Positions 4,150 to 61,425 of a stretch of 64,000 nucleotides of DNA are shown here, piece by piece. The notes beneath the pieces are model-generated. The model did not search any database and had not been told where the DNA came from. It saw only the letters and a program-made list of their open reading frames with translations. The position numbers and the translations under genes are program-made. Each line of letters opens with the position of its first letter. Position 1 is the first letter of the stretch. The stretch is taken from IMG/VR virus record IMGVR_UViG_3300017917_001123, positions 62,001 through 126,000 of that record; one strand, 5' to 3'.

Positions 4150-4154
4150 TTTTG

Positions 4155-4183
4155 TTGACATTGACCAATTTTCTAAATATAAT
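4155..4183 (+). promoter_or_regulatory. consensus sigma70 promoter with overlapping TAAATA late box
   Basis: TTGACA(4155-60)-17 nt-TATAAT(4178-83); TAAATA at 4174-79; SD AGGAG downstream. Confidence 0.8.
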
Positions 4184-4207
4184 GTAACATACAGGAGAAT
4201 AATAAAA

Positions 4208-4942
4208 ATGAAAGACATCCTTCAAGATATCGTAAGTCATACACATAATCTAGGCTTCCTTAACATTGTTAAGATCACAGGCGCAGAAGACAAAACAGTT
4301 ATTGACTCAATGGCAGACGACCGCTCTGTAATTCTACAAGCAGAAACTGCTAATCCGTATCCAGACATGATTGGCGTGTTTGGTATGCCACAACTTAACA
4401 AACTAAAGATTCATCTAGATTGTCCCGAATATAAAGAGGACGCAAAGATCGATGTTGTTAAAGCAGATCGAAACGGTGTTACTCTTCCGGTAGGCCTTCA
4501 CTTTGAAAATAAGAAAGGCGACTTCAAGAACGACTATCGCTTTATGAACACAGAAATTATCAACGAAAAGTTGAAGACTGTTAAGTTCAAAGGTGTCAAT
4601 TGGGATGTTGAGATTGTTCCTAGCGTTGCCGCAGTTCAGCGTTTTAACTTCCAAGCAAGTGCTAACTCCGAACATACTACATTTATTGCCAAGACCGACG
4701 GCGATAAGCTAAAGTTCTATTTTGGTGACGCAAGTACACACGCAGGTGAGTTTGTTTTTGCTGAAGGCATTACAGGTAAGATTACAACTAACCTAGCATG
4801 GCCTGTTTCACAAGTTCTAGCAATTCTAAAGATTGCTGATGTAAACAATACTAAGATGAGCTTTAGTAACGCAGGTGCTCTTCAAATTGAGTTAGACAGT
4901 GGTCTAGCAAAATACAAGTACATTGTTCCAGCACAAGCATGA
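4208..4942 (+). CDS. putative sliding clamp (gp45-like)
   Basis: 244 aa from ATG 4208 (SD AGGAG), with a two-repeat alpha/beta pattern and clamp-like size, immediately after the polymerase (which ends in a clamp-binding-like NLFTFE). The ORF-track start at 4124 runs through the promoter. Confidence 0.6.
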   Translation: MKDILQDIVSHTHNLGFLNIVKITGAEDKTVIDSMADDRSVILQAETANPYPDMIGVFGMPQLNKLKIHLDCPEYKEDAKIDVVKADRNGVTLPVGLHFENKKGDFKNDYRFMNTEIINEKLKTVKFKGVNWDVEIVPSVAAVQRFNFQASANSEHTTFIAKTDGDKLKFYFGDASTHAGEFVFAEGITGKITTNLAWPVSQVLAILKIADVNNTKMSFSNAGALQIELDSGLAKYKYIVPAQA

Positions 4943-5319
4943 TAAAAGGCATTACACAATCAGGCAGATATACTGTGGTTAGTGGCGGTACTGCCTCTAA
5001 CCCGTATATTAGCCCAGGAGCAACTGGAGCAGGAATGGTTCGTTGGAATCCCAACATGAGCCAATTAGAAGTAAACGACGGCAATAATTGGCAGTCAATT
5101 GCAATGAGCTTTGCTAGCGTTGGATTAACTTCAGAAGCAGAGAGCATTTTAGATTGGGCAAGAAATAAAATGCGTGAAGAATTTGAAATGAAGGCTCTTG
5201 CCGAACAACATCCTGCTGTCAAGATTGCTCTAGAAAACCTAAATAAAGCACAAGAACAACTTAAGGCAACAGTAATATTAAGCAAGGATTATCAATCGAA
5301 TGAAGAAACCACCACTTAA
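4939..5319 (+). CDS. hypothetical protein
   Basis: ATGA coupling; 126-aa ORF. Confidence 0.7.
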   Translation: MIKGITQSGRYTVVSGGTASNPYISPGATGAGMVRWNPNMSQLEVNDGNNWQSIAMSFASVGLTSEAESILDWARNKMREEFEMKALAEQHPAVKIALENLNKAQEQLKATVILSKDYQSNEETTT

Positions 5320-6919
5320 CTTAACACCTCTACAGAAAGACTATGCTGTCTATTTGCCGGCTATTAGTTCTTTCTACGAGAACTATATCTCTAAGCAAAG
5401 ACTTGGGGAGTTTATTTCTACTGATCGTATCCCTAAAGGATTTGATCGCGGTATCGAAGGCATGAACTTCTTAAACGAAGAACAAGGATATTTTACATAT
5501 CGTTATGCTTTGTATTCCGCAGGTCACGCACAACTGGATCTGGAAAAAGCAATAGATCAAGAGTCTATGATTCAACAACGACAAAGAAATAGTACAGTTA
5601 TTGTCGGCGACTCCGGTGGATACCAGATTGGTAAAGGTGTTCTTAAGTTTGATTGGCTAAACTTTGAAGGTGCCGAAGCTAATAAGACTCGTCAAAAGAT
5701 TCTCGAGTGGTTGGAAATGACTGCTGATTGGTCAATGATGCTAGACGTTCCAACTTGGGCCTGTGACCACATTCATAGTCCAAAGACTGGATTAAAAACA
5801 TTTGAAGACTGTCTAGACAAGACACGTTTCAATAACGATTACTTCCTTAAGAATCGTTTAGGCCAAACAAAGTGGCTTAACGTTCTACAGGGTAGTGACT
5901 GGGATACTGCTGAAAAGTGGTATCAAGGCGTAAAAGAATTCAGCGACCCGAATGGTCCATACAAAGGCCGCGAAGCCGAAGGGTGGGCGTTTGGTGGCGC
6001 TAACATGTGTAAAATGGATATTACTCTAAAGCGATTAATGACGCTTAGAGAAGATGGTTTGCTGAAAGGCAAAAACTGGATCCACTTCCTGGGTACAGCA
6101 CAGTTAGATTGGTCATGCTATCTAACACTTATTCAACGTCAAATTAGGAAGCACATTAATGAAGAAATTACCATCTCTTTTGATTGCGCCTCACCGTTTA
6201 TCGCAACAGCGCACGGACTCGTCTACACAAATGCCCAACACACCAACAAACGTTGGTCGGTTATTATGGACAAAGCACCAGATAACAAAGCACTTGCAGG
6301 AGCAGATATCCCGTTCCCATTCGAGTCAGAGTTCGGTCGCAGACTAACAATGGGCGATATTGCCTATTACGATCTAGGTGTTAGAAAGTCTGATGCTGAA
6401 TTAAATGGTGCTAAGTTTGATCACTTGAATCCAGATCACTATCATGTTGTTCCTAAAATTAACAAGCTAGGTAAGATTCCCAATAAAACAAGTTGGGATA
6501 GTTTTAGCTATGCTTTAATGATGGGTCATAACGTTGAATGCCATATTGTTGCTGTACAACGTGCCCAACAATTAATGGATATCGAATGTGCTAGATTTAA
6601 ACCAGACTGGCGTCATTGGGGTATCGAAGGTAAGAAAGAAAAAGAATTTAGCGACTGGGTTCCACGCAGAATTCTATACTTTGCTACATTTGTTGAAGAG
6701 TTATTCAATACCAAAACAAAAGCAGAAGCATTTGACTTAATTGAATCTGCTTTACCACTTCTTCGTAGTTTAGAAGGTGCTCGACTACAAGGTGGTCCTG
6801 CTCAAAATACATTTGGTAGTTTGTTTGAGGTCGAAGAAGTTCGTCAAGAAGAAATTGATTTCGCAAGTCCAGATGATGACGAACTAAGAGCACTCGAAGA
6901 AGAACTAAAAGATCAGTAA
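5300..6919 (+). CDS. dpdA: TGT-family 7-deazaguanine DNA transglycosylase (DpdA-type)
   Basis: TGT barrel motifs in order: GDSGGYQ (catalytic Asp), MLDVP, NVLQG, WAFGG, WIHFLG, SFDCASP (nucleophile Asp), terminal GHN. Clustered with folE, queE and a queD paralogue. Confidence 0.85.
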   Translation: MKKPPLNLTPLQKDYAVYLPAISSFYENYISKQRLGEFISTDRIPKGFDRGIEGMNFLNEEQGYFTYRYALYSAGHAQLDLEKAIDQESMIQQRQRNSTVIVGDSGGYQIGKGVLKFDWLNFEGAEANKTRQKILEWLEMTADWSMMLDVPTWACDHIHSPKTGLKTFEDCLDKTRFNNDYFLKNRLGQTKWLNVLQGSDWDTAEKWYQGVKEFSDPNGPYKGREAEGWAFGGANMCKMDITLKRLMTLREDGLLKGKNWIHFLGTAQLDWSCYLTLIQRQIRKHINEEITISFDCASPFIATAHGLVYTNAQHTNKRWSVIMDKAPDNKALAGADIPFPFESEFGRRLTMGDIAYYDLGVRKSDAELNGAKFDHLNPDHYHVVPKINKLGKIPNKTSWDSFSYALMMGHNVECHIVAVQRAQQLMDIECARFKPDWRHWGIEGKKEKEFSDWVPRRILYFATFVEELFNTKTKAEAFDLIESALPLLRSLEGARLQGGPAQNTFGSLFEVEEVRQEEIDFASPDDDELRALEEELKDQ

Positions 6920-7497
6920 TGAACTTTATAGCAGAATACCAATTGAGCGACACAACTGTTTGTGACGCTCTTTTGGAACTTTTTAAACAAGCACATCAAC
7001 AAGGTTTTACCAAACCTGGTATAGTTGGGTTTGGAACAAAAGAAACTCCAGAAGTAAAGCGTAGCACAGATCTTTACTTGCCAGACGCTGACAGTTTGGG
7101 CTCTCCTGCTAATTTTCGTTTTCCGGAATATAACAACGATTTAACCAAATTCATTGACAATTATTGTATAGAGCGTAAAATATATAACTACTGCGGAAAA
7201 TTTGAAATGCGCTATGCGCCACAAATACAATGGTACAAACCAGAGGAAGGTTTTTATCAGTGGCATATAGATGGAGGTCAAGAACTTTGCGAAAGAGCTT
7301 TAGTTTTTTTAACTTATCTGAATGATGTTGAAGACGGTGGAACTGAATTCTTAAATCAAAACTTAACTGTTAAAGCAGTTAAGGGTAAGACAATTATTTT
7401 TCCAACTGGACTTACACATATACATCGCGGACAAGTTTCAAAAACTCAAGACAAATATATTTTAACTGGCTGGCTTTATTGGGATAACACAAAGTAA
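6919..7497 (+). CDS. 2OG-Fe(II) oxygenase (prolyl-4-hydroxylase-like)
   Basis: WHID...YLNDVEDGGTEF...HIHRG...KYILTGW (HxD...H facial triad, 2OG-binding Lys); TAATG-coupled to dpdA. Confidence 0.9.
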   Translation: MNFIAEYQLSDTTVCDALLELFKQAHQQGFTKPGIVGFGTKETPEVKRSTDLYLPDADSLGSPANFRFPEYNNDLTKFIDNYCIERKIYNYCGKFEMRYAPQIQWYKPEEGFYQWHIDGGQELCERALVFLTYLNDVEDGGTEFLNQNLTVKAVKGKTIIFPTGLTHIHRGQVSKTQDKYILTGWLYWDNTK

Positions 7498-7498
7498 T

Positions 7499-8026
7499 AT
7501 GAAAAGAGATTATACTATTGGCACCGCAGAAGACATTACGTTTTTTACCGGAGTAGAAGTCGAAAAAACTCCTGCTTTTGGTAAACGTACTTTGTTTGTT
7601 GTAGGTCTACAGGACCCGCATATTATCATTCATCTTGCCAAAGATAATAATTGCGACCATATCTATTTTGGTGCTAACCAAAGTTTTCCTAAACTCGAAG
7701 TAAATGATGCCAGCAATTGGCGAGAATGGGAAGATATGATTGTCGATTGTATCGAAGCAGGCTTCTTGTGTACGCTAGATCTTGATGTTTCACAAGTAGA
7801 GGGCCTGGTAGAAGGGCGTCTGGTAGAATACCGAAACTTTATTCCGCAAATTTCGGTGAAAGTGCCCTATTTACAACAGCTAGGATATAATGCTACAATT
7901 AAGCTAGACGACATTGATTTTAACGCAACTAATCATGGCGTTTGGTGTCATATGCTTCACGATCTAACTAAGCGTAAAAACTTTACAAGCTGGAATGAAT
8001 ACGGTAAGGATGAAATTATCAAATGA
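7499..8026 (+). CDS. hypothetical protein in the deazaguanine cluster
   Basis: 175-aa alpha/beta ORF (TLFVVG, HIYFGAN, CTLDLD, TIKLDD, GVWCH); ATGA-coupled to the next gene. Confidence 0.75.
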   Translation: MKRDYTIGTAEDITFFTGVEVEKTPAFGKRTLFVVGLQDPHIIIHLAKDNNCDHIYFGANQSFPKLEVNDASNWREWEDMIVDCIEAGFLCTLDLDVSQVEGLVEGRLVEYRNFIPQISVKVPYLQQLGYNATIKLDDIDFNATNHGVWCHMLHDLTKRKNFTSWNEYGKDEIIK

Positions 8027-8463
8027 GTCAAGAAAAAACACAAAGAGTTATGGATCAGGCCCAACGTCAAATCTGGGTAACCTTTCGCAAAGAAGGCATT
8101 CACAAATATCCTGCGGCCGCAACGGACCCCGCACTAGCAACCGGAGACGAATATGATGTTTCGTTCCTTGGTGTTCCTCATCGTCATATCTTCCATTTCC
8201 GGGTGTGGATTGATGTGTTCCACAATGACCGGGACATCGAATTCATCCAATTCAAACGTTGGCTCGAGAACCTGTATAATGGTCAAGGTGCCGTATTAGA
8301 ACTAAATTATAAGTCATGCGAGATGATCGCAGATGACTTATATCAGCAGATTACTTTGCGATATCCAGATCGCAACGTAAGCATTGAGGTAGCCGAGGAC
8401 GGCGAGAACGGATGCCTCATTCATTATAACCTTTCTCGCCCGTATCAAACTCTTTCTATTTAA
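8023..8463 (+). CDS. QueD-like T-fold protein of DpdL type (proposed CDG decarboxylase)
   Basis: H(KYP)...LGVPHRHIF = LxxxHRHxF in place of the QueD CxxxHGH; SCEM and C-terminal AEDGENG are the T-fold Glu positions. Confidence 0.75.
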   Translation: MSQEKTQRVMDQAQRQIWVTFRKEGIHKYPAAATDPALATGDEYDVSFLGVPHRHIFHFRVWIDVFHNDRDIEFIQFKRWLENLYNGQGAVLELNYKSCEMIADDLYQQITLRYPDRNVSIEVAEDGENGCLIHYNLSRPYQTLSI

Positions 8464-8474
8464 AGGAAAAGAAA

Positions 8475-8699
8475 ATGTCGCAACCAAAGTGGCTCGACAA
8501 ATATCTGGTTATGAAACCAGAAGTCAACAAGATCTTCGACGATCTTGAAGCATGGCACGATCATTGCCGTTTTGAAATGATCAACTTCAATCCGGCAGAC
8601 TTGTACAAGTCTAGGGAGTACAAGGAGTTTGCCAATAAGGGCAAGCGCCGTTTCCACAACTACAACGGATCGAAGCCATACCGTAAATTCAACCAATGA
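8475..8699 (+). CDS. hypothetical protein
   Basis: SD AAGGA; 74 aa; ATGA overlap with the glycosyltransferase. Confidence 0.65.
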   Translation: MSQPKWLDKYLVMKPEVNKIFDDLEAWHDHCRFEMINFNPADLYKSREYKEFANKGKRRFHNYNGSKPYRKFNQ

Positions 8700-9778
8700 C
8701 AGTATTCTTAGTAGACTTAGAAGCTGTTGAAACTAGGTACACTGGTCAGTGGAAGACTTGGGTACCTAGTCTTCTTAAAAAGGCGGGACACGATGTCACA
8801 GTTATCTCTGGACCTACTGACATTCCTAACAGTACCACTCCTGGTGCTTTTCTCAATTTTGGTGGTACAAATATATACAAAGCGAGACAAGTTGAGGAAT
8901 TTAGTAGGCTATTTTGCGCCGGAACAGTTAAGCCTGGCGATCATTTTCTGTTTACTGATGCTTGGCATCCTGGCATCACGAATCTAAAATACATGAGCGA
9001 GCTTCTTAACATACCTGTTAAGATTCACGCATTATGGCATGCTGGTAGTTACGATCCTCAAGACTTCCTAGGTCGTCTAATCGGAGATGCTCCTTGGGTT
9101 AGACACGCCGAAAAGAGTTTCTTCGAGTCAATCGATCACAACTATTTTGCTACAGACTTTCACATCGACATGTTCTTACATAATCTGCTCGACTTAGGTC
9201 GTTTTGCAGATAAAGAAATTGTCTTTGAAATGTTCAATACAGGAAAGATTGTACGTACTGGATGGCCAATGGAATATATGGAAGATACACTCTTAGACTA
9301 TAAAAATATGCCTAAGCGTGATTTGATTCTATTCCCGCATCGTATAGCACCCGAGAAGCAAGTTGAGATTTTTAGAGATCTCAAAGAACAGCTACCACAA
9401 TACGAATTTATTGTGTGTCAGGATCAACAGCTAACAAAGAATGAGTATCATAATTTGTTAGGCGAGTCGAAGTTGGTATTCAGTGCGAACTTACAAGAAA
9501 CCCTAGGTATTAGTTGGTACGAAGGTGCCATTGTAGATGCTATTCCTATGGTTCCAGATCGTCTAAGCTATTCAGAAATGGCATTTGATACATTTAAGTA
9601 TCCTAGTGAATGGACTGAAAGTTATGACGCCTATCTCAAACATAGACAAGAAATCTGCTTTAAGATAATCCAGTATATGGACAATTACGATCATATGTTA
9701 CCTATGCTTCGTAAGCAGACAGCTTATCTAACAGAAAACTTTTTTAGTGCTACAAAACTATTGGAAAATATAAAATGA
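8696..9778 (+). CDS. GT-B (GT4-like) glycosyltransferase
   Basis: FPHRIAPEK donor-binding loop; E-x7-E motif (QETLGISWYEG); VPDRLSYSE; two-domain length of 360 aa. Confidence 0.85.
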   Translation: MTVFLVDLEAVETRYTGQWKTWVPSLLKKAGHDVTVISGPTDIPNSTTPGAFLNFGGTNIYKARQVEEFSRLFCAGTVKPGDHFLFTDAWHPGITNLKYMSELLNIPVKIHALWHAGSYDPQDFLGRLIGDAPWVRHAEKSFFESIDHNYFATDFHIDMFLHNLLDLGRFADKEIVFEMFNTGKIVRTGWPMEYMEDTLLDYKNMPKRDLILFPHRIAPEKQVEIFRDLKEQLPQYEFIVCQDQQLTKNEYHNLLGESKLVFSANLQETLGISWYEGAIVDAIPMVPDRLSYSEMAFDTFKYPSEWTESYDAYLKHRQEICFKIIQYMDNYDHMLPMLRKQTAYLTENFFSATKLLENIK

Positions 9779-10557
9779 AGATTGGAATCGTCGGCGCCGG
9801 ATTTGTAGGTGGCGCAGTTAAAAATGCCTACGATACGTTTCAAGTACCTGTTTTGGTACACGATCCTGTTAAAGGATTTGTTGCCAGCTGGGAAGAACTT
9901 AAAACCTGTGATGGCGTTTATGTCTGCGTCCCTAGTCCCACTTCCGATACCGGCGAGTGCGATACAAGTATCTTAGAAGATGTTCTTAAAAATCTAGCAG
10001 GTATGGAAGGTGTTATTATTAGTAAAGTAACAGCACCTCCGGGTGTTTATTCTAAACTACAAGTAATCTACCCTAATCTAGTTCACGCACCAGAGTTTCT
10101 TGTTGCGGCAACTGCTAACGAAGATTATATCAATGGTACTTTTGCCTACATCGGCGGTGCTGAAGAATATTGTCAAAAGGCTGAAGCAGTTATCCGTGCT
10201 AGCCAACCAAGTTTGACAGATGTTACTTACTGTACCATTACCGAAGCAAGCCTAGCAAAATACACCATTAACAGTTTCCTAGCTACTAAGGTTGTGTTTA
10301 TGAATCAAATTTATGATCTAGCACAGCAACTAGGTGTAAACTTTAACTCGCTAACCAACATGCTTCTAAGCGAAAAGCGTTTTGGCAACAGTCACATGCG
10401 TGTTCCTGGTCCAGACGGAAGCAGAGGTTTTGGCGGAGCATGTTTTCCTAAAGATACTGCCGCACTAGTCTATGAAGCAGAAAGAGCAGGAGTTGATTTT
10501 TCCTTACTTAAGAGTGCTATCAGTGCTAATAAAAAGCTACGCGGCCTTGACAAGTAA
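9775..10557 (+). CDS. UDP-glucose/GDP-mannose 6-dehydrogenase-family protein lacking the C-terminal domain
   Basis: GxGxxG (GAGFVG), CVPSP, KVTAPPG, PEFL, EASLAKY, GFGGACFPKD (catalytic Cys); ends at 260 aa. Confidence 0.88.
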   Translation: MKIGIVGAGFVGGAVKNAYDTFQVPVLVHDPVKGFVASWEELKTCDGVYVCVPSPTSDTGECDTSILEDVLKNLAGMEGVIISKVTAPPGVYSKLQVIYPNLVHAPEFLVAATANEDYINGTFAYIGGAEEYCQKAEAVIRASQPSLTDVTYCTITEASLAKYTINSFLATKVVFMNQIYDLAQQLGVNFNSLTNMLLSEKRFGNSHMRVPGPDGSRGFGGACFPKDTAALVYEAERAGVDFSLLKSAISANKKLRGLDK

Positions 10558-10576
10558 ACCTAAATATTAGTATAAT
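10547..10576 (+). promoter_or_regulatory. sigma70 promoter with TAAATA in the spacer (folE)
   Basis: TTGACA(10547-52)-18 nt-TATAAT(10571-76); TAAATA at 10561-66. Confidence 0.75.
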
Positions 10577-10583
10577 AACATAT

Positions 10584-10609
10584 GGCAATCCTCTGCCTTA
10601 ACATCGGAG
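10584..10609 (+). promoter_or_regulatory. candidate H-type pseudoknot in the folE 5' leader
   Basis: GGCA-ATCCTC-TGCC hairpin followed by TTAACATC; the loop is complementary to SD GGAG. Confidence 0.4.
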
Positions 10610-10615
10610 TATTAA

Positions 10616-11311
10616 ATGAGTGAAAAAAATTTAGCGCAAGCAATTAGAGAAAACATGAGACGCAACGGAAAGCGTTTCTGGGCTGGCGACAATATCAGCG
10701 AATACGTAGACGAAAATGTTCTCCCCGAACTGGTAGACGAAGCAACAGAAGCGTTTGAAAAAGTGTTGGATGCGTTGTTAATTGATCGCGAAACAGATCC
10801 TAATAGTAAGGGCACAGCACGTAGACTGGCCAAAATGTACTTTAACGAAATAATGGCAGGAAGATATGCCCCAGCACCAGACGCAACAAGTTTCCCTAAC
10901 GATTCGGAGGACCGCTACGAAGGTATGTTGGTTGTTCGCAGTGAGCTTCGCAGTATGTGTAGCCATCATCACCAACCCGTTACTGGTGTTGCCTATATTG
11001 GTATTATTGCGGCTCAACACCTCATTGGCCTCTCTAAGTACACAAGGATTGCCCAATGGTGCGCCCGACGTGGTACTCTCCAGGAGGAACTTGCTAATGA
11101 TATTGCTCGCGAGATCGCCAAAGCCACAGGAGCAAAAGACCTAGGAGTTTATATTCAAGCCACGCATGGTTGCTGTGAAAATCGTGGCATTATGGCACAT
11201 AGTTCTTTAACACAAACAACTGTATTACGTGGTGCGTTTAAAGATGATCCAGGCACAAAGAAGGAATTCTTTGACAACATTAAACTCCAACAAGAGTTTG
11301 CTCCAAGATAA
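10616..11311 (+). CDS. folE: GTP cyclohydrolase I
   Basis: SMCSHHHQP, IGLSKYTRI, LQEEL, HGCCENRG (Zn ligands Cys/His/Cys). Confidence 0.95.
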   Translation: MSEKNLAQAIRENMRRNGKRFWAGDNISEYVDENVLPELVDEATEAFEKVLDALLIDRETDPNSKGTARRLAKMYFNEIMAGRYAPAPDATSFPNDSEDRYEGMLVVRSELRSMCSHHHQPVTGVAYIGIIAAQHLIGLSKYTRIAQWCARRGTLQEELANDIAREIAKATGAKDLGVYIQATHGCCENRGIMAHSSLTQTTVLRGAFKDDPGTKKEFFDNIKLQQEFAPR

Positions 11312-11324
11312 GAAAGGAACTATT

Positions 11325-11711
11325 ATGGGCGAAACAGGATACGCAGTAGAAGCAGAAGCATATATTCCAGAACAAAAGAAAAAGAAAAAGGGAAACTTTA
11401 TCTCACGTTGGATGCTTAAGGCTCTAAAGAGCGCAGTAGCAGAAGAACAACAACAAGAAAAAGAAAGAGCCGCAATGAATCAAATTAAAATGCCACGAAG
11501 CATCGGTACTATCCAAAGTGGTCCATCTTTAGATAGCGATAAGGGAATTCGCTTCCAAGTATATAAAGCACAAGGCGGATTTGTTGTTGAAACTAACTCC
11601 TACGATAGAACTAGAGATCGTCATTTTAGCAGTCTTCATATTGTTGGCGACGATGAAAAGTTTGGTGATAAAATTGAAAAAATTATCACCATGGAGGCAC
11701 TTAAACAGTGA
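11325..11711 (+). CDS. hypothetical protein
   Basis: ATG 11325 with SD AAGGA; the longer ORF-track start overlaps folE. Confidence 0.7.
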   Translation: MGETGYAVEAEAYIPEQKKKKKGNFISRWMLKALKSAVAEEQQQEKERAAMNQIKMPRSIGTIQSGPSLDSDKGIRFQVYKAQGGFVVETNSYDRTRDRHFSSLHIVGDDEKFGDKIEKIITMEALKQ

Positions 11712-11929
11712 ACCCAGATAGCGTTATGTACGAAATGTTTGACGGATACGTTACTATGTCGTCCGTTGATGCTCAACATGAGTGGATGAACCGATATCGT
11801 ATTGACGCTATCCGGATGGGCCGTATGTGTGAAAAGTTCCCAGCTTTACAAAAGTCATGGGACGATTTTAAATTAATCTACGAAATTTGCCGGAGTCAAG
11901 ATGACATCGATCGACAAACTCATAATTAA
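11708..11929 (+). CDS. hypothetical protein
   Basis: GTGA overlap; SD GGAGG. Confidence 0.65.
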   Translation: MNPDSVMYEMFDGYVTMSSVDAQHEWMNRYRIDAIRMGRMCEKFPALQKSWDDFKLIYEICRSQDDIDRQTHN

Positions 11930-12458
11930 CCAATCTCACTTTAACAGTCTTGTAAGTAAAATTTGCAGAGACATTACTGTTAGTGGTTGGAGACCTGACT
12001 ACATTGTTGGAATTACACGGGGAGGTCTTCTCCCTGCTCTTATGATGAGTCACTACTTTAATGTCCCGTTACATACACTAAATGTAAGTCTACGAGATAA
12101 TACAAATATAGGACCTGAATCAAATTTATGGATGGCCGAGGATGCGTTCGGTTACGATAGCAATCCAGAAACTTCAATTAAATCTAACGCAGATCTTAAA
12201 AAGAAAATTCTTATAGTAGATGACATTAATGATAGCGGAGCAACACTTAACTGGATTATGAAGGATTGGCAGTCTGGATGTTTACCTAATCAAAACGACT
12301 GGAATTATATCTGGAATAATAATGTAAAGTTTGCTGTAATTGTTGATAACCTAGCTAGTAAGTGTGATGTTAAAATGGACTTTGTTGGCATGGAAGTTAA
12401 TAAAGCAGAAAAAGATGTATGGGTTGATTTCCCATACGAGGATTGGTGGACAAAATGA
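11901..12458 (+). CDS. type I purine phosphoribosyltransferase (Gpt-like)
   Basis: IVGITRGGL, PRPP-binding ILIVDDINDSGATL, C-terminal WVDFPYE. Confidence 0.9.
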   Translation: MTSIDKLIINQSHFNSLVSKICRDITVSGWRPDYIVGITRGGLLPALMMSHYFNVPLHTLNVSLRDNTNIGPESNLWMAEDAFGYDSNPETSIKSNADLKKKILIVDDINDSGATLNWIMKDWQSGCLPNQNDWNYIWNNNVKFAVIVDNLASKCDVKMDFVGMEVNKAEKDVWVDFPYEDWWTK

Positions 12459-12658
12459 AATTAGTAAGACCCGGAACACGATGGTGGGATGGCACAAATA
12501 AAAGGTTTCTCGTACTCGCTGTAGTCGAAACAGACGATGGACATACATGGGTACATTACAGAGAAGACAAAGGAATAAAAACTCCAGCAACGGACTGTAA
12601 AGAATATAGCTGTTACATTGAGAGTTTTGAACAAAGATTTAGAAGCTTACCAGAATGA
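12455..12658 (+). CDS. small hypothetical protein (DUF1653-like pattern)
   Basis: ATGA overlap with the PRTase stop; all-beta pattern ending FEQRF. Confidence 0.55.
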   Translation: MKLVRPGTRWWDGTNKRFLVLAVVETDDGHTWVHYREDKGIKTPATDCKEYSCYIESFEQRFRSLPE

Positions 12659-13026
12659 CAAGATTAGAAGGATTCGTACAAAAGGGTTGGGGACACGAAT
12701 TAATTTGGTGTACCACTGACAAATACTGTGGCAAACTTTTGAAATTTAACAAAGGTGCCAAATTCAGTATGCACTTCCATGCTGAAAAAGATGAGACTTG
12801 GTTTGTCCTAGATGGCAAGTTCGAAGTGAAGTTTATCGACACTAAAGACGCACATCAAGGAAGCGCAATTCTTAATCCAGGTGATACGTGGCATAATCCG
12901 CCACTATTCCCACATCAAGTTATTTGTCTAGAAGAAGGTACTATCATCGAAGTTAGTACGCCCGATTCAATTCAAGACAACTATCGAGTAATGCCCGGAG
13001 ATAGTCAACGTGAGAGTAATGGTTAA
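12655..13026 (+). CDS. cupin (sugar-phosphate isomerase-like)
   Basis: KGWGHE, SMHFHAEKDETW, HNPPLFPHQ, EVST. Confidence 0.85.
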   Translation: MTRLEGFVQKGWGHELIWCTTDKYCGKLLKFNKGAKFSMHFHAEKDETWFVLDGKFEVKFIDTKDAHQGSAILNPGDTWHNPPLFPHQVICLEEGTIIEVSTPDSIQDNYRVMPGDSQRESNG

Positions 13027-13411
13027 CGGCACCTTTGATATTGTCCATAGAGGACATATCGAACTACTAAACTACGCAAAAAGTCAAGGCGATTTTTTGC
13101 TAGTTGCCATTGATACAGATCGTAGAGTTAAAGAACTCAAAGGAGAAAAACGTCCTATTAATAATCAATGGGACAGGTGGTTTTTGCTTGATAACCTACG
13201 AGCTGTAGATACTGTTAGATTTTTTGATAGTAAAGAAGAGCTAATAGAGATAATGAAAGAATACAAACCAGATGTCTACGTTAAGGGCGGGGATTGGAAA
13301 CGAGACAAGCCTGGTACAGCAGAACAATATTGTGATAAAGTAATTTACTATGACAGAGTCGGTTCATATTCAACAACCAAAACCATTGACGATATTATTA
13401 ATCGGGGATGA
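13010..13411 (+). CDS. nucleotidyltransferase, HldE/RfaE domain II-like
   Basis: NGTFDIVHRGH (HxGH), KG..RPIN, VKGGDW, STT. Confidence 0.88.
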   Translation: MRVMVNGTFDIVHRGHIELLNYAKSQGDFLLVAIDTDRRVKELKGEKRPINNQWDRWFLLDNLRAVDTVRFFDSKEELIEIMKEYKPDVYVKGGDWKRDKPGTAEQYCDKVIYYDRVGSYSTTKTIDDIINRG

Positions 13412-14120
13412 TTGCCTCGACGTCTACCAATTCGGTAGCGTAGATCGCATTTCGCCCGAGGCGCCTGTTCCCGTCTTTAAGTACGGGCGGAATGAAACTG
13501 TAGGCGGAATGGCACGTAACGTGAAGCGCAATCTAGAAGAACTAGGTTGTATTGTTACTTACATGTGCGGACAAACAAGTGTTAAGACACGCCTTATCGA
13601 CCAAAGATCAAAACAACATGTTCTCCGCGTAGACAACGACAATCGCAGTCAACCCCTATTATTTGAAGACATTCCATTCAACCTAAATAGTGCTAATCTA
13701 GATGCTATTGTAGTGTCTGACTATGACAAAGGTTATGTTAGTTACGAACTAATCGAAAAACTAATTGCTAATTTTAAAGGACCTGTATTTGTTGATACAA
13801 AGAAAACAGACTTAAAGCGATTAGAAGGCGCATACATTAAAATCAATGAGCTCGAGTATAGTAAATTGATTACTAAATGCTCAGGAATTATTGTTACACT
13901 AGGAGAAAAGGGTGCTCGTTACAACGACGTAATTGTGCCGGCTCCTAAGGTAGAAGTTAGTGATGTTTGCGGAGCAGGAGATACCTTTTTATCTGCTCTC
14001 ACATATAGATATTGCCTAAGTAAAGATATTATAGATGCTATGGAATTTGCGGTTAAGGCAAGCTCTATAACAGTACAGCATCTAGGAAATTACGCACCAG
14101 CGTTAGGAGAATTAAAATGA
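13350..14120 (+). CDS. PfkB sugar kinase, HldE/RfaE domain I-like
   Basis: GDDCLD..RISPEAPVP, GGMARNV, VSDYDKG, KINE, DVCGAGDTF. Confidence 0.9.
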   Translation: MTESVHIQQPKPLTILLIGDDCLDVYQFGSVDRISPEAPVPVFKYGRNETVGGMARNVKRNLEELGCIVTYMCGQTSVKTRLIDQRSKQHVLRVDNDNRSQPLLFEDIPFNLNSANLDAIVVSDYDKGYVSYELIEKLIANFKGPVFVDTKKTDLKRLEGAYIKINELEYSKLITKCSGIIVTLGEKGARYNDVIVPAPKVEVSDVCGAGDTFLSALTYRYCLSKDIIDAMEFAVKASSITVQHLGNYAPALGELK

Positions 14121-14446
14121 AATTTGGTGGATGGGATGTAGGCGGAAAAGTTGTTAAACAAAGTGACGTCTACACAGTAAAAGATAATACAGCATTAAAA
14201 AATTTAATCGTTAGTTCAACAACACTACATCCGGGCAAGAGTACATCCGGGCATAGCCACGCAGGCCAAGAAGAAGTTTATCAATTTATTCGAGGCCAAG
14301 GAAAGATGACTTTAGATAATGAGACCTTTAATGTCTACCCAGGTGATGTAGTGTTAATTCAAGACGGGGTGTTTCATCGTGTTCATAACACCGGACATGA
14401 AGACATGTACTTTGTTTGTGTTTTTGATGGGAAGAGGAATCACTAA
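14117..14446 (+). CDS. cupin domain protein
   Basis: GHSHAGQEEVY...GDVVLI..GVFHRV. Confidence 0.85.
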   Translation: MKFGGWDVGGKVVKQSDVYTVKDNTALKNLIVSSTTLHPGKSTSGHSHAGQEEVYQFIRGQGKMTLDNETFNVYPGDVVLIQDGVFHRVHNTGHEDMYFVCVFDGKRNH

Positions 14447-14856
14447 TGTTTAAACAAGACAATCATATTTTTAAAGGCATACCGGACGATATCGAGGATA
14501 GCAAGGCTCCGTGGACTGAACTTATTGCTGAAGACTATCATGTAAAAGTTTTCAAAGACAAATATCCCTGTACGCCCGGGCACTTGTTGTACGTGCCTAA
14601 ATATAACACCTTAGGAGTTTTAAGCGATGCGTTTGAAGATGCTGTTAGATACGGTAAGACAATGGTGGAAGCCGGAGAATGGGACGGTTTCAATGTTGGA
14701 CTTAACTATGGCGAAAGCGCAGGTCAAACTGTGCCTTGGCCTCATATTCATCTTATCCCGCGCAGAAACGGCGACGTCAAAGATCCGATCGGCGGTGTTC
14801 GAAACACGATCCCGGGCAAAGGAAACTATCGCTCTCCGGACTATTCAAACGATTAA
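14446..14856 (+). CDS. HIT family nucleotide hydrolase
   Basis: DKYP..PGHLLYVPK, AGQTVPWPHIHLIPR (first triad His replaced by Trp). Confidence 0.85.
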   Translation: MFKQDNHIFKGIPDDIEDSKAPWTELIAEDYHVKVFKDKYPCTPGHLLYVPKYNTLGVLSDAFEDAVRYGKTMVEAGEWDGFNVGLNYGESAGQTVPWPHIHLIPRRNGDVKDPIGGVRNTIPGKGNYRSPDYSND

Positions 14857-14908
14857 ACCAGCAACTTTTACTTATAACACAAGTGGAAATATTGGAATAG
14901 GAAACACC

Positions 14909-15223
14909 ATGCCACCTGCAGGTCAATTTGTTTTTAAATCGTACGAAAAAAGTATTTTAACTATAACTGCCGACGGTGATGTAATTTGGAACGGCAAACC
15001 GAGTCAAGCCGCAGAGGTTTTGGTTAAAAGTTTCCAAATGGCTGTTGAAGATAAAAAGGGTGTTACCAAAGCGGCCAAGCGTAGGTATTATTATCAAGCC
15101 TGTAAAAATATTCTAAATAAAGCTGAAAAAATGGAACATAAGGAGTTTATTGACTTTCTCCAAAAGCAAGTGTATAATAGAGAACGTAAAGTCATTATTG
15201 ATAGTTTAAAAGGAGATTCATAA
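14909..15223 (+). CDS. hypothetical protein
   Basis: ATG 14909 with SD AGGA; start uncertain (frame is open back to 14627 across HIT). Confidence 0.6.
   Translation: MPPAGQFVFKSYEKSILTITADGDVIWNGKPSQAAEVLVKSFQMAVEDKKGVTKAAKRRYYYQACKNILNKAEKMEHKEFIDFLQKQVYNRERKVIIDSLKGDS
15150..15178 (+). promoter_or_regulatory. intragenic sigma70 promoter for the CDGSH-queE pair
   Basis: TTGACT-17 nt-TATAAT inside the preceding CDS. Confidence 0.6.
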
Positions 15224-15384
15224 TGCAAGTAAGAGCTTCAGCAGATGTAGGTAAGTGCGGTTGCGGTCGTAGCCCAACTGGTAAATGTATCGGATGGCAT
15301 GGCCTAACCGAAGACGAGTTTAAGAAAAAACTCGAGGAATATAAACTTACTGAACAAAAAGCTACAGGAACTCCAAGTGAGTAA
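15223..15384 (+). CDS. CDGSH/NEET-type [2Fe-2S] miniprotein (53 aa, absent from the ORF track)
   Basis: MQVRASADVGKCGCGRSPTGKCIGWHGLTEDEFKKKLEEYK...; C-x-C-x2-S-x4-C-x-G-x-H; SD AGGAG; TAATG coupling; overlaps the queE start. Confidence 0.75.
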   Translation: MQVRASADVGKCGCGRSPTGKCIGWHGLTEDEFKKKLEEYKLTEQKATGTPSE

Positions 15385-16234
15385 AATCAAAGTCGCAGAG
15401 CTGTTTTACAGCATACAAGGAGAAGGACGCTTTATGGGCGTTCCTTCTGTCTTCTTACGTACATTTGGTTGTAATTTTACATGTGCCGGATTTGGCATGC
15501 CAAGAGGAGAACGAAGTGTTGAAGCAGAAAATATTGACGCATCTAAGTACACCGAGTACAAATCGCTTCCTTTGGTATCTACAGGTTGTGATAGTTACGC
15601 TTCTTGGGATCCTCGCTTTAAGCATCTATCTCCCCTTCTGGATACTACTGCGATTGCCGATGCTATTGTGGATACGTTACCTTACAAGGAATGGCGGGAC
15701 GAACATCTCGTAATTACAGGTGGCGAGCCTTTGCTAGGTTGGCAACGTGCTTATCCAGACTTGCTTAATCATCCTAAGATGACTAGCTTAAAAGAGCTAA
15801 CTTTTGAAACAAACGGTACAATGCGTTTGACAAAAGATTTTAGACATTTCTTGCTAGACTGGACACTAAGCCCAGTTCATGGTCGAAGAGGTTACAATGC
15901 CCTTACATTTAGTGTAAGCGCAAAACTTCCTTGCTCAGGCGAACCGTGGGAAGATGCTATTAAGCCAGAAGTTGTTTGTGACTACGAACAGGTTGGTTAC
16001 ACATACCTTAAGTTTGTTATTGCTTCAGAACAAGACGCACTAGATGCCGATCGTGCCGTAGAAGAATATCGCAAGGCAGGATTCAACGGTCCTATCTATC
16101 TAATGCCAGTCGGCGGCGTTGAAAGCGTTTATGCTCTTAACAATCGTCGTGTAGCAGATCTCGCTATGAAGAAGGGCTATAGATATTCCGATAGATTACA
16201 AGTTCCGCTCTTTAAAAACGAGTGGGGAACTTAA
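15377..16234 (+). CDS. queE: 7-carboxy-7-deazaguanine synthase (radical SAM)
   Basis: ELFYSIQGEG, FLRTFGCNFTC...GCDS, VITGGEPL, FETNGT, LKFVI, YLMP, RLQ. Confidence 0.92.
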   Translation: MSKIKVAELFYSIQGEGRFMGVPSVFLRTFGCNFTCAGFGMPRGERSVEAENIDASKYTEYKSLPLVSTGCDSYASWDPRFKHLSPLLDTTAIADAIVDTLPYKEWRDEHLVITGGEPLLGWQRAYPDLLNHPKMTSLKELTFETNGTMRLTKDFRHFLLDWTLSPVHGRRGYNALTFSVSAKLPCSGEPWEDAIKPEVVCDYEQVGYTYLKFVIASEQDALDADRAVEEYRKAGFNGPIYLMPVGGVESVYALNNRRVADLAMKKGYRYSDRLQVPLFKNEWGT

Positions 16235-20136: not shown

Positions 20137-21225
20137 ATGGCAAAAGGCGAAAGCGTTAGCGCAAACCGCACCCAAACTCCTAATGAAGCTAAAGCGGCAA
20201 TCCGCAAATGCTTTAAAGTCAATCGCCCTGTTTTTATGTGGGGCCCCCCTGGTATTGGTAAGTCCGATATTGTTCACCAAATTGGTGCCGAACAAGAGCG
20301 TGAAGTTATTGACGTTCGTTTGAGCCTTTGGGAACCTACTGACATTAAGGGTATTCCTTTTTACAATGCCAGCACTGGTACTATGGAATGGGCACCGCCT
20401 GTTGAACTTCCTAGCGATCCAGAATCTACCGCAATTTTGTTCCTTGACGAACTTAACTCTGCGGCTCCTGCTACTCAAGCGGCGGCTTATCAGCTAATCC
20501 TTAACCGTCGTGTTGGTACTTATAAGTTGCCTAAGGGTGTTTCAATTGTTGCCGCAGGTAACCGTGAAACTGACAAGGGTGTTACTTATCGTATGCCTGC
20601 TCCGCTGGCTAACCGTTTCCTACACTTGGAACTGAAAGTTAGTTTTGATGACTGGCAGGAATGGGCAGTTAACAACAAGATTAACGAACAAGTCGTTGGT
20701 TACATTGGTTTTGCTAAACAAGACCTTTACGACTTTGATCCTAAGAGCTCGAGCCGTAGCTTTGCTACTCCCCGTTCTTGGTCTTTCGTAAGTGATTTGC
20801 TTGGCGACGATGACCTGCCTGAATCAACGCTCACTGACCTCGTAGCAGGTGCTATCGGTGACGGTTTGGCTGTTAAGTTTATGGCTCACCGTAAGGTCGC
20901 CAAGCAAATGCCTAAGCCAGAAGATATTCTGAGCGGTAAGGTTAATAAGGTTTCTATCAAAGAAATCTCAGCGATGTACTCGTTGGTTATTAGTCTGTGC
21001 TACGAACTCCAAACTGAGCACGAGAAGAAGAACAAAGAGTGGAACGCTCTTGCTGATAACTTCTTTGGCTTTATGATGGATAACTTCCCAACCGAATTGG
21101 TTGTTATGGGTTCCAAAGTTGCTCTTACTAACTACGGACTGCCATTCGATAGTTCTAAGATGAAGAACTTTGATCGATTCCATGAACAGTACGGCAAGTA
21201 CATTATTACCGCAATGGAGAACTAA
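20137..21225 (+). CDS. MoxR-like AAA+ ATPase
   Basis: Walker A GPPGIGKS, Walker B LFLDE, AAGN, PLANRF, sensor-2 TPRSW. Confidence 0.92.
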   Translation: MAKGESVSANRTQTPNEAKAAIRKCFKVNRPVFMWGPPGIGKSDIVHQIGAEQEREVIDVRLSLWEPTDIKGIPFYNASTGTMEWAPPVELPSDPESTAILFLDELNSAAPATQAAAYQLILNRRVGTYKLPKGVSIVAAGNRETDKGVTYRMPAPLANRFLHLELKVSFDDWQEWAVNNKINEQVVGYIGFAKQDLYDFDPKSSSRSFATPRSWSFVSDLLGDDDLPESTLTDLVAGAIGDGLAVKFMAHRKVAKQMPKPEDILSGKVNKVSIKEISAMYSLVISLCYELQTEHEKKNKEWNALADNFFGFMMDNFPTELVVMGSKVALTNYGLPFDSSKMKNFDRFHEQYGKYIITAMEN

Positions 21226-21229
21226 AATT

Positions 21230-21251
21230 GGGCCCTCCGGGGCCCTTTTTT
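21230..21251 (+). terminator. rho-independent terminator
   Basis: GGGCCC-TCCG-GGGCCC followed by T6. Confidence 0.85.
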
Positions 21252-21253
21252 AC

Positions 21254-21282
21254 TTGACTTATTGGTAAAACGAGTATATAAT
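21254..21282 (+). promoter_or_regulatory. sigma70 promoter
   Basis: TTGACT-17 nt-TATAAT; SD GGAG before 21314. Confidence 0.75.
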
Positions 21283-21313
21283 ATATACATACTGTTAGAA
21301 ATTGGAGTAACAA

Positions 21314-61422: not shown

Positions 61423-61425
61423 CGC

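Follow-up and report, generated by a model that had tools for sequence, protein, structure and literature searches.

A pathway for replacement of guanine by 7-deazaguanine bases in phage DNA has been described for Cellulophaga phage phiST and for phage ACP17 (PMC10516641), where, with no QueC, it combines FolE, QueE, a transglycosylase (DpdA3) and DpdL, a QueD paralogue that carries an LxxxHRHxF motif and is predicted to decarboxylate 7-carboxy-7-deazaguanine (CDG) to 7-deazaguanine. Phage phiST carries plain dDG in its DNA. In contrast, dpdL plus dpdA of ACP17 alone gave no dDG in E. coli, and the authors suggested that further enzymes may be needed. Sugar decoration of phage DNA is established for a different base, where the α- and β-glucosyltransferases of T4-type phages act on 5-hydroxymethylcytosine. 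Sugars are also placed on 7-deazaguanine derivatives outside DNA, as by HuiG during synthesis of the natural product huimycin, whose acceptor is a free O-methylated preQ0 base, and by the eukaryotic queuosine mannosyl and galactosyl transferases, which act on queuosine in tRNA.

To compare a new locus with these systems, we examined a window of 64,000 nucleotides (positions 62,001 to 126,000 of IMG/VR record IMGVR_UViG_3300017917_001123), which is part of a 331-kb contig of an uncultivated aquatic jumbo phage. A sequence-only reading had proposed that the region directly after the polymerase and clamp genes is a 7-deazaguanine DNA-modification cluster with an embedded sugar-transfer arm. Inspection of the window confirms the gene run: all listed ORFs exist on the + strand at the stated positions and most are overlap-coupled, with the corrections given below. 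The features are as follows.

1480-4149 (+), family B DNA polymerase, the context gene that anchors the conserved replication block
4124-4942 (+), clamp-like conserved protein, real start probably the ATG at 4205
4155-4183 (+), perfect sigma-70 consensus (TTGACA, 17 nt spacer, TATAAT)
5300-6919 (+), DpdA-like DNA guanine transglycosylase, 539 aa
6919-7497 (+), 2OG-Fe(II) oxygenase
7499-8026 (+), conserved 175-aa orphan (orf175), a core partner of unknown function
8023-8463 (+), DpdL, predicted CDG decarboxylase
8475-8699 (+), 74-aa protein
8696-9778 (+), GT-B, GT4-like, retaining-type glycosyltransferase (GT), 360 aa
9775-10557 (+), truncated UDP-glucose/GDP-mannose dehydrogenase-like protein
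10547-10576 (+), second perfect sigma-70 consensus, just upstream of folE
10616-11311 (+), GTP cyclohydrolase I (FolE), the first step to 7-deazaguanines
11901-12458 (+), purine-type phosphoribosyltransferase (PRTase)
12655-14446 (+), cupin, cytidylyltransferase-like protein (13010-13411), PfkB/HldE domain I kinase (13350-14120) and a second cupin
14446-14856 (+), HIT-family protein
15223-15384 (+), 53-aa Cys-rich protein, CDGSH-like by eye only
15377-16234 (+), QueE-like radical-SAM enzyme (7-carboxy-7-deazaguanine synthase)

Family searches identified most of these genes directly. The polymerase matches PF00136 at 4e-38 and PF03104, and is syntenic in Pseudomonas jumbo phage PA5oct, Phosso and IMG/VR relatives. 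The neighboring clamp-like protein matches only phrog_12062 (2e-38), which is of unknown function, such that the clamp assignment rests solely on the annotation of its Phosso homologue as a sliding clamp. FolE matches PF01227 at 8e-39, the PRTase matches PF00156 at 1e-12 with weak matches to xanthine PRT and HGPRT models, and the HIT protein matches PF01230 at 7e-10. The oxygenase matches PF13640 and phrog_61, while the cupins, kinase and cytidylyltransferase-like protein were assigned by Pfam and NCBIfam hits. The dehydrogenase-like protein retains PF03721 and PF00984 and the catalytic Cys motif but has no C-terminal domain, which agrees with the proposed truncation; TIGR03026 scores 121 bits, below its cut-off. 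QueE is divergent, where five NCBIfam QueE models match the N-terminus at about 1e-11, below their cut-offs, and alignment shows an unusual Cx3Cx34C cysteine spacing. It is 30% identical to the "QueE-like" gp162 of PA5oct. The protein proposed as CDGSH has no Pfam hit and only an approximate motif, and the 74-aa protein has no family hit. Both sigma-70 sites match the consensus at 12/12 positions, and the first is the likely promoter of the unit running from the clamp-like gene through dpdA and the GT to the dehydrogenase-like gene. However, the total count of promoter-like sites is not above that of shuffled sequence, so both sites are leads only.

Three key assignments required deeper work. 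The 539-aa protein has no Pfam (including PF01702), PHROG, NCBIfam or PDB sequence hit. AlphaFold2 nevertheless predicts a tRNA-guanine transglycosylase (TGT) fold with confidence (pLDDT 89.6), and the top 28 Foldseek hits in the PDB are all TGT (E about 1e-6). D104-S-G-G, D149, H262 and D295 are invariant or nearly so in 73 homologues. The protein thus keeps the catalytic Asp residues, and we conclude that it is a divergent DpdA. It shares with bacterial TGT and with the bacterial DpdA of the Dpd restriction-modification system the TIM-barrel fold, the DSGG catalytic motif and a second invariant Asp in an FDC/YDS context, but has no conserved CxCxxC...H zinc site and carries a helical C-terminal extension of about 140 aa; no DpdB or DpdC partners were seen. 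The family is also separate from the DpdA3 proteins, with a link to ACP17 DpdA3 only at profile level (hhalign, 96.7% probability) and a weak link to phiST DpdA3. Homologues sit beside QueC, QueF, YhhQ-like and FolE genes in Vibrio phage 2.275.O.

The gene read from sequence alone as an HRH-type QueD paralogue is DpdL. Its LGVPHRHIF sequence matches LxxxHRHxF as defined in PMC10516641, and tblastn recovers the phiST and ACP17 dpdL genes. An HMM scan found no canonical QueD in the window. The reported absence of queC agrees with our finding of no QueC hit among the ORFs scanned; QueF and ArcS were not sought by model, and, the large minus-strand ORFs (23762-58207) and the 71-aa ORF at 12443-12658 (which was scanned) aside, short ORFs under 100 aa beyond position 17000 were not scanned. 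The third protein is predicted by AlphaFold2 to adopt a GT-B fold (pLDDT 92.2), for which Foldseek returns glycogen synthase, BshA, MshA and other GT4/GT5 enzymes at E 5e-10. R216, K221, E268 and E276 are invariant, the last two forming an EX7E motif, and 26 of 41 homologues hit PF00534.

We next asked which genes are conserved across 22 close and 30 more distant relatives. The GT and DpdL are present in 22/22 and 30/30, the clamp-like protein in 22/22 and 28/30, QueE in 22/22 and 26/30, FolE in 20/22 and 30/30, orf175 in 22/22 and 18/30, and the PRTase, a frequent member of the module, in 16/22 and 19/30. The orf175 family has more than 7,400 members, all hypothetical, with no Pfam or PDB match even by profile. 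The 74-aa protein is conserved only in the window's own clade (21/22 and 3/30). In contrast, the oxygenase is present in 1/22 and 0/30, the cupins, kinase and cytidylyltransferase-like protein each in 0-1/22 close relatives, the HIT protein in 10/22 and 10/30, the semi-variable dehydrogenase-like protein in 9/22 and 5/30, and the Cys-rich protein in 6/22 relatives. The sequence-only interpretation, that the inserted base may be oxidised and/or glycosylated, is therefore only partly supported: a 7-deazaguanine DNA-modification cluster with the GT as a real, conserved member is supported, whereas neither oxidation nor an embedded sugar-transfer arm is. That is to say, the oxygenase, cupins, HldE-like genes, HIT and truncated dehydrogenase are variable cargo. 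Genes of this type in jumbo phages (cupin, PfkB kinase, nucleotidyltransferase and GT sets) have been assigned to surface-glycan remodelling (PMC7824862), and the sequence-only reading had cautioned that the oxygenase and sugar genes here could act on virion proteins or host surface glycans. For the GT itself this is very unlikely, given its presence beside DpdL and DpdA in the relatives and its travel with DpdA in bacterial islands that have no surface-glycan genes nearby.

Whether the GT stays linked to dpdA and the HRH-type gene, or occurs independently of dpdA, had been set out in advance as the test of the proposal, and the linkage held. In GT-seeded scans, DpdL lies within 2.5 kb in 101/102 phage loci (49/49 and 52/53) and DpdA within 6 kb in 62/62 (29/29 and 33/33). 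In a DpdA-seeded scan, 39/41 loci carry the GT; the two without it also lack DpdL, and one of these carries QueC instead. These large counts come from related jumbo phages with conserved synteny and are not independent events. However, the GT stays next to DpdA and/or DpdL in at least seven phage lineages with different backbones, sitting beside DpdA in PA5oct, ACP17, Xanthomonas and Burkholderia phages and a cyanophage, and beside DpdL in Phosso. Independent backbones include PA5oct (dpdA-GT-dpdL-PRT-queE), ACP17 (queD-folE-orf175-dpdA3-GT-dpdL-queE), BUDD, BCSR5, Phosso and cyanophage BUCT-ZZ01, which also has the PRTase. Bacterial islands likewise have the GT adjacent to DpdA.

The closest cultured relative is PA5oct (Wroclawvirus), whose gp168-gp162 block is syntenic in the order PolB, clamp-like, DpdA-like (44.5% identity), GT (41%), DpdL (52%), PRTase (gp163), QueE and exonuclease. 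PA5oct lacks a detectable orf175 and the cargo genes, and FolE is not in that block. Its DNA is reported to resist restriction at G-containing sites, from which a modified G is inferred, although the modification has not been identified chemically. ACP17 has the same GT and orf175 genes in one operon, with orf175 (gp122) directly upstream of DpdA3, but neither was discussed as a pathway member in PMC10516641. Phage phiST lacks both.

The phiST case raises the possibility that the module makes plain dDG or dCDG DNA, and that the GT serves another target, such as a protein partner or a different base, or has a non-catalytic role beside DpdA. Nothing in the sequence names the acceptor, and the best structural matches of the GT act on small molecules or glucans, with T4 enzymes not among the 50 best matches listed from either structure library. 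We regard this alternative as possible but less likely, as the catalytic-type residues of the GT remain invariant across 24-93% identity, the gene stays adjacent to DpdA or DpdL on unrelated backbones and in bacteria, and it is lost together with DpdL in relatives where QueC takes over. A second alternative is that the GT glycosylates a free small molecule of the GTP-derived pathway whose product is not in DNA, either a pterin, as for the cyanobacterial tetrahydrobiopterin (BH4) glucosyltransferase, or a free deazapurine, as for HuiG. Foldseek hits include BH4 glucosyltransferases (5zes and 9v0l, ranks 25-29) and small-molecule GT4 enzymes such as BshA and MshA, and FolE and the PTPS-like T-fold protein DpdL lie beside the GT; homology between HuiG or the queuosine glycosyltransferases and the phage GT was not tested. 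This reading is doubtful, as the BH4 glucosyltransferase matches are no better than generic GT4 matches and the tightest partner of the GT is the DNA transglycosylase, including in bacterial islands that lack FolE, DpdL and QueE. A glycosylated free base could still be the substrate that DpdA inserts, which merges this alternative with our preferred explanation.

Taken as a whole, the region is best explained as a phage DNA-hypermodification module built into the replication gene block, where we place the probability of the full reading, including the sugar, at roughly 50%. Our analysis itself demonstrates the presence of FolE, a divergent QueE, DpdL, a TGT-fold enzyme of a new, Pfam-invisible DpdA family and a GT4-like enzyme genomically linked to DpdA and DpdL; the steps that follow are inferred. 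FolE and QueE, together with a QueD supplied from elsewhere in the genome or by the host, would make CDG, and DpdA would swap G in phage DNA for the deazaguanine base after replication. The GT would then add a sugar from a host NDP-sugar to that base, or possibly act just before insertion. The PRTase may recycle the released guanine to GMP, feeding FolE, and orf175 may be a further, unknown step. No chemical evidence for a sugar exists, and the product was not measured here. Plain 7-deazaguanine has no obvious O or N handle at C7, such that the attachment site is unexplained, and three bacterial islands have the GT plus DpdA but no DpdL, so the acceptor cannot depend strictly on DpdL. The logic would follow that of T4, with a phage GT-B enzyme adding a host sugar to an already modified base as a second layer of protection, but with a purine analogue rather than a pyrimidine, a different GT family and no evident hydroxymethyl handle. 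The result would be a glycosylated 7-deazaguanine that shields the DNA from restriction enzymes and from defences that recognise plain deazaguanines, and the DNA of this phage may thus hold the first known sugar-decorated purine.

To establish which gene assignments hold, each ORF of the run was first compared with family models. Every gene of the run lies on the + strand and most overlap by a few bases, and the gene run described by the sequence-only reading proved to be real. Pfam, PHROGs and NCBIfam searches confirm PolB, the 2OG-Fe(II) oxygenase, FolE, a purine-type PRTase, two cupins, a cytidylyltransferase-like protein, a PfkB/HldE domain I kinase and HIT, together with a second 2OG oxygenase just outside the run. 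The UDP-glucose/GDP-mannose dehydrogenase-like protein is likewise confirmed, with NAD-binding and central domains, but lacks the three-domain architecture (NAD-binding, central and UDP-binding C-terminal) of its family, as only PF03721 (partial) and PF00984 match and the protein ends about 30 residues after the catalytic-Cys motif, with folE as the next gene. The peptide read as CDGSH has no family hit, and the protein read as a clamp has only an unannotated PHROG match, although its homologue in Sinorhizobium phage Phosso is annotated as a sliding clamp. Pfam, PHROGs, NCBIfam and PDB sequence searches returned nothing for the 539-aa, 360-aa and 175-aa proteins themselves, and the 146-aa protein matched only an unannotated PHROG family and one insignificant PDB entry. 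The window is bases 62001-126000 of IMGVR_UViG_3300017917_001123. At the DNA level no cultured phage is close to this 331,570-bp viral contig, where a megablast of the whole region against cultured phages found only a 92-bp polymerase match. Features discussed below by coordinate are as follows (window positions).

4155-4183, perfect sigma-70 consensus site upstream of the clamp-like gene
7499-8026, 175-aa orphan (orf175)
10547-10576, perfect sigma-70 consensus site upstream of folE
15377-16234, QueE-like protein
20137-22573, MoxR-type AAA ATPase followed by a DUF2201 metallopeptidase/VWA protein
23762-58207, minus strand, run of large ORFs
34779-48761, minus strand, single 4,660-aa ORF within that run
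52251-52688, gp25-like baseplate wedge protein, also within that run
60409-63222, Mre11-like phosphoesterase and Rad50-like SMC ATPase with a zinc hook (gp47/gp46-type recombination nuclease)

The two promoter-like sites each match the consensus at 12/12 positions (TTGACA, 17-18 nt spacer, TATAAT) and lie at gene boundaries. They suggest one transcription unit from the clamp-like gene to the dehydrogenase-like gene and another starting at folE. The overall count of such sites is no higher than in shuffled sequence, such that these sites are a lead only, yet their placement is unusual for a jumbo phage replication block and suggests early transcription by the host polymerase. Downstream of the module, the MoxR-type ATPase is shared with the Pseudomonas jumbo phage PA5oct, the 4,660-aa ORF is probably a giant structural or fibre protein, and the recombination nuclease pair lies at the far end of the window. 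In PA5oct (locus L081:5605-10831) the orthologous PolB is split into two ORFs by a Hef-like homing endonuclease gene, whereas the PolB of the window is intact.

Inspection of the QueE-like protein reveals a divergent sequence. Five NCBIfam QueE models match it at 39-45 bits and E of about 1e-11, all far below their cut-offs and mainly over the N-terminal 35 residues, and it shares 30% identity with the PA5oct protein annotated as QueE-like; these matches leave its membership of the family unsettled. The same holds for the three-Cys radical-SAM cluster motif, where the cysteines are spaced Cx3Cx34C instead of Cx3Cx2C or Cx14Cx2C. This pattern is shared with PA5oct (L081:16451-17323) and Xanthomonas phage BUDD (L084:10858-11751), whereas ACP17, Phosso and BCSR5 keep the usual Cx3Cx2C, and may represent an undescribed QueE cluster-binding variant.

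Given the lack of sequence hits for the 539-aa protein, we next examined its family and its predicted fold. The family is very large, with more than 6,800 homologues, contigs of 330-360 kb among them, and 858 representatives at 50% clustering. An alignment of 73 diverse members has invariant D104-S105-G-G107, H262, G265 and D295, with D149 present in 72/73. A profile of the family reaches bacterial TGT in the PDB only at E of about 1, but in the correct register, with DSGG aligned on the DSGGYQ motif of TGT. The AlphaFold2 model is confident (pLDDT 89.6, pTM 0.90) and its best 28 PDB matches are all tRNA-guanine transglycosylases (E 1e-6 to 1e-3, probability 1.00), which establishes the TIM-barrel TGT fold. 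Both catalytic-type aspartates of the superfamily are present, where equating D295 with the TGT nucleophile is an inference from the local 'FDC' context. In contrast to canonical TGT, no Pfam hit to PF01702 was obtained at E <= 0.01, there is a helical C-terminal extension, and the C-terminal zinc site (CxCxxC...H) is not conserved. No conserved Cys cluster follows D295, and only C171 (59/73), C355 (42/73, Ala in the window protein) and H410 (61/73) are conserved.

Comparison with DpdA3 in the sense of Cui et al. (2023, PMC10516641) gave a graded result. Profile comparison by hhalign links the catalytic core to ACP17 gp123 at 96.7% probability and E 4e-10, whereas the match to the short phiST DpdA3 (CGPG_00065) gives 80.7% over 84 columns, the BLASTP E is 0.012, and tblastn finds no DpdA3 phage. 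These values do not settle membership of the DpdA3 subfamily and are best read as indicating a sister family rather than a described subfamily. Genomic context is independent of these comparisons, in that the protein is linked to FolE, QueE and DpdL here and in relatives, and a homologue in Vibrio phage 2.275.O lies next to QueF, a YhhQ-like transporter, QueC, an amidotransferase and FolE, while in the IMG/VR relative L189 the homologue lies near QueC. We therefore accept the earlier assignment as dpdA as a function call, although exchange of G in DNA for a deazaguanine was not measured here.

The protein previously read as a QueD paralogue is DpdL. Its motif LGVPHRHIF, at residues 49-57 and conserved in the alignment, is the LxxxHRHxF signature that replaces the QueD CxxxHGH motif and that Cui et al. 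used to define DpdL (PMC10516641). These authors predicted DpdL to be the CDG decarboxylase giving 7-deazaguanine, and it occurs in phages that have FolE, QueD and QueE but no QueC. Hits by tblastn fall on the DpdL genes of phiST and ACP17, where the phiST match has 34% identity over 79% of the query (E 1e-8) at the position of CGPG_00067, with an HMM E of 2e-19. Decarboxylase activity was not assayed in this work and is unproven in the literature, as the heterologous test failed (PMC10516641). No canonical QueD is in the window; QueD is probably elsewhere on the contig or supplied by the host, but the rest of the 331-kb contig was not examined for it. PA5oct encodes its PTPS far from the cluster (gp230), and some relatives carry QueD inside the cluster.

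For the 360-aa protein, which itself has no family hit, several lines of evidence agree on a glycosyltransferase (GT). Six homologues at 24-52% identity share invariant R216, K221, E268 and E276, where the two glutamates form an EX7E motif and R216 and K221 are invariant across 41 homologues; in GT4 enzymes such basic residues bind the donor. The window protein has no hit to PF00534 (Glycos_transf_1) at E <= 1 but 26 of 41 aligned homologues do, the best at 7e-15, a split outcome that does not settle this family match. The model is confident (pLDDT 92.2) and depicts a two-Rossmann-domain GT-B fold, and Foldseek matches it to retaining enzymes such as glycogen synthase, BshA, MshA, GlgM and PglA at E 5e-10 to 1e-6. 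One of the alignments used for structure prediction was built from IMG/VR loci. In the viral structure library the best match is the ACP17 protein (TM about 0.9). T4 alpha- and beta-glucosyltransferases are not its closest structural relatives, as neither is among the 50 best matches listed from the PDB or the viral library. A special relationship to the tetrahydrobiopterin glucosyltransferases was also considered and rejected, as those matches rank below generic GT4 enzymes.

To address whether the GT stays with dpdA and dpdL, which the sequence-only reading had set in advance as the check on its own proposal, loci were collected with GT peptide patterns and those with enough flanking sequence were kept. 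DpdL lies within 2.5 kb of the GT in 49/49 close relatives and 52/53 more distant ones, with a median gap of about 200 bp, and a DpdA lies within 6 kb in 29/29 and 33/33. The proposal passes on this point, although these loci are related jumbo phages with conserved synteny, such that the counts are not independent events, and GT-versus-DpdA co-phylogenies were not built. Different backbones provide the stronger evidence. PA5oct has the order dpdA-like, GT, dpdL, PRTase, queE; the T4-like Acidovorax phage ACP17 has queD, folE, an orf175 homologue, dpdA3, GT, dpdL, queE; Xanthomonas phage BUDD has GT, dpdA3, dpdL, queE; Phosso has dpdL, GT, folE; and Burkholderia phage BCSR5 provides a further backbone. 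The cultured T4-like cyanophage BUCT-ZZ01 of Synechococcus (L188:7358-11515) has queE, PRTase, queD, folE, a weak GT-like gene, dpdA3, dpdL and GT. In this phage the GT after DpdL is clear (HMM E 2e-37), whereas the 447-aa gene before DpdA3 is only weakly GT-like (E 2e-4), and the PRTase between QueE and QueD is a xanthine-guanine PRTase. If the weak match is real, two GTs could mean a disaccharide.

Bacterial genomes, scanned with an alignment of four sequences, carry the same GT directly beside the same DpdA family in mobile or defence-island-like settings (loci L179:6086-9038, L180:5593-9071, L182:7357-12321 and L183:7404-12321, from the genera Pelagibacterium, Methylobacterium, Sulfitobacter and Pseudooctadecabacter). 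In Pelagibacterium the pair lies next to a resolvase, a patatin and an OLD-family nuclease, and in Methylobacterium it occurs with DpdL, a serine recombinase and a VapE-like protein. In Sulfitobacter and Pseudooctadecabacter the order is YhhQ-like, GT, DpdA, then a conserved 585-aa unknown protein, with a C5 DNA methylase nearby in Pseudooctadecabacter. These loci may represent a bacterial DNA-marking system.

Seeding on DpdA instead gave a consistent picture, where 39 of 41 loci carry the GT and the two that lack it also lack DpdL. One of these two, the IMG/VR relative L189 (L189:10741-14002), has the same PolB, clamp-like and DpdA backbone but carries QueC, and a myo-inositol-1-phosphate-synthase-like gene lies right after its DpdA. 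That is to say, on one phage backbone a DpdL plus GT cassette alternates with a QueC route.

To separate core genes from cargo, the presence of each gene was counted in close and more distant relatives.

Presence of each gene in close relatives, then in more distant relatives.
DpdA, DpdL, GT, QueE, FolE: 20-22/22; 26-30/30
orf175: 22/22; 18/30
PRTase: 16/22; 19/30
74-aa gene: 21/22; 3/30
2OG oxygenase: 1/22; 0/30
Cupins and PfkB kinase: 0-1/22; 0-3/30
Cytidylyltransferase-like: 1/22; 9/30
HIT: 10/22; 10/30
CDGSH-like peptide: 6/22; 0/30
Truncated dehydrogenase: 9/22; 5/30

The interpretation first offered from the sequence is therefore supported only in part, as its proposed oxidation step and its 'sugar arm' are not conserved parts of the pathway. 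The sugar-nucleotide genes fit the cargo reading given for jumbo phages by Iyer et al. (PMC7824862). The dehydrogenase-like gene follows the GT in about 40% of close relatives and might tune the donor sugar, but this is speculation.

The 175-aa orphan belongs to a family of more than 7,400 clustered proteins, including Tara Oceans genes, all of which are unannotated. Its invariant residues (T31, K135, D137, D138, N145, W149) suggest an enzyme. Profile searches against PDB and Pfam gave nothing, a large protein search returned only hypothetical proteins, and no structure prediction was made for it. No credible homologue was found in PA5oct, BUDD or phiST, a weak N-terminal resemblance in BCSR5 is not significant, and the Phosso 'glycosylase' at the equivalent position is unrelated.

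Placing these genes in a pathway draws on established chemistry, where FolE, QueD and QueE make CDG and DpdA enzymes exchange G in DNA for deazaguanines after replication, whereas DpdL is predicted, but not proven, to give 7-deazaguanine (PMC10516641). What our analysis demonstrates directly is the presence and conservation of these genes and their tight linkage to a catalytically intact GT; we infer from this that the GT adds a sugar to the deazaguanine, in DNA or just before insertion, that the PRTase recycles the guanine released by base exchange, and that orf175 performs a further unknown step. The attachment chemistry is the weak point, because plain 7-deazaguanine has no heteroatom at C7, and no DpdA-GT complex was modelled. 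Three bacterial islands have the GT without DpdL, such that the acceptor feature may be common to several deazaguanines. Circumstantial support comes from PA5oct, whose DNA resists five restriction enzymes and is targeted by nucleases that sense modified G, and whose base is unidentified (PMC12191111), from the absence of dDG in E. coli given only dpdA plus dpdL of ACP17, where the authors suspected that enzymes were missing (PMC10516641), and from sugar-bearing 7-deazapurine bases that exist as natural products. We are confident that the module makes deazaguanine DNA and consider it likely that the GT belongs to the pathway, whereas we place the probability that the final DNA base carries a sugar at about 0.45-0.5.

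A deazaguanine synthesis and incorporation system in PA5oct has been noted before, and the DpdL route is published (PMC10516641). In the literature searched, we found no report of the GT as a conserved pathway member, of the orf175 partner, of this DpdA family as a defined group, of the bacterial DpdA-GT islands, or of any glycosylated deazaguanine in phage DNA or other DNA. The deazaguanine DNA bases listed in the 2023 survey carry no sugar (PMC10516641), our searches found none since, and known DNA glycosylation is on hydroxymethyl-pyrimidines. Both this Pfam-invisible DpdA family and the orf175 family are currently annotated as hypothetical in very abundant aquatic jumbo phages, an annotation gap that this work fills.

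A glycosylated deazaguanine would be a new class of DNA base and would explain two open results, namely the unidentified modified G of PA5oct (PMC12191111) and the failure of ACP17 dpdA plus dpdL alone to give dDG in E. coli (PMC10516641). Such bases affect sequencing, cloning and restriction of phage DNA, and the enzymes could become tools for site-selective DNA labelling. Hosts now deploy END nucleases and Dag glycosylases that target modified G, which gives a selective reason for a second protective layer, and a sugar could be such a layer, as glucosylation is for T4. In this still tentative view, a DpdA-glycosyltransferase pair, found in thousands of aquatic jumbo-phage contigs, in cultured phages of Pseudomonas, Acidovorax, Xanthomonas, Burkholderia, Sinorhizobium and Synechococcus, and in defence-island-like loci of Alphaproteobacteria, would write a sugar-bearing 7-deazaguanine into DNA. 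This would be the first glycosylated purine-type base in any genome, and in the bacterial loci it might mark self DNA.
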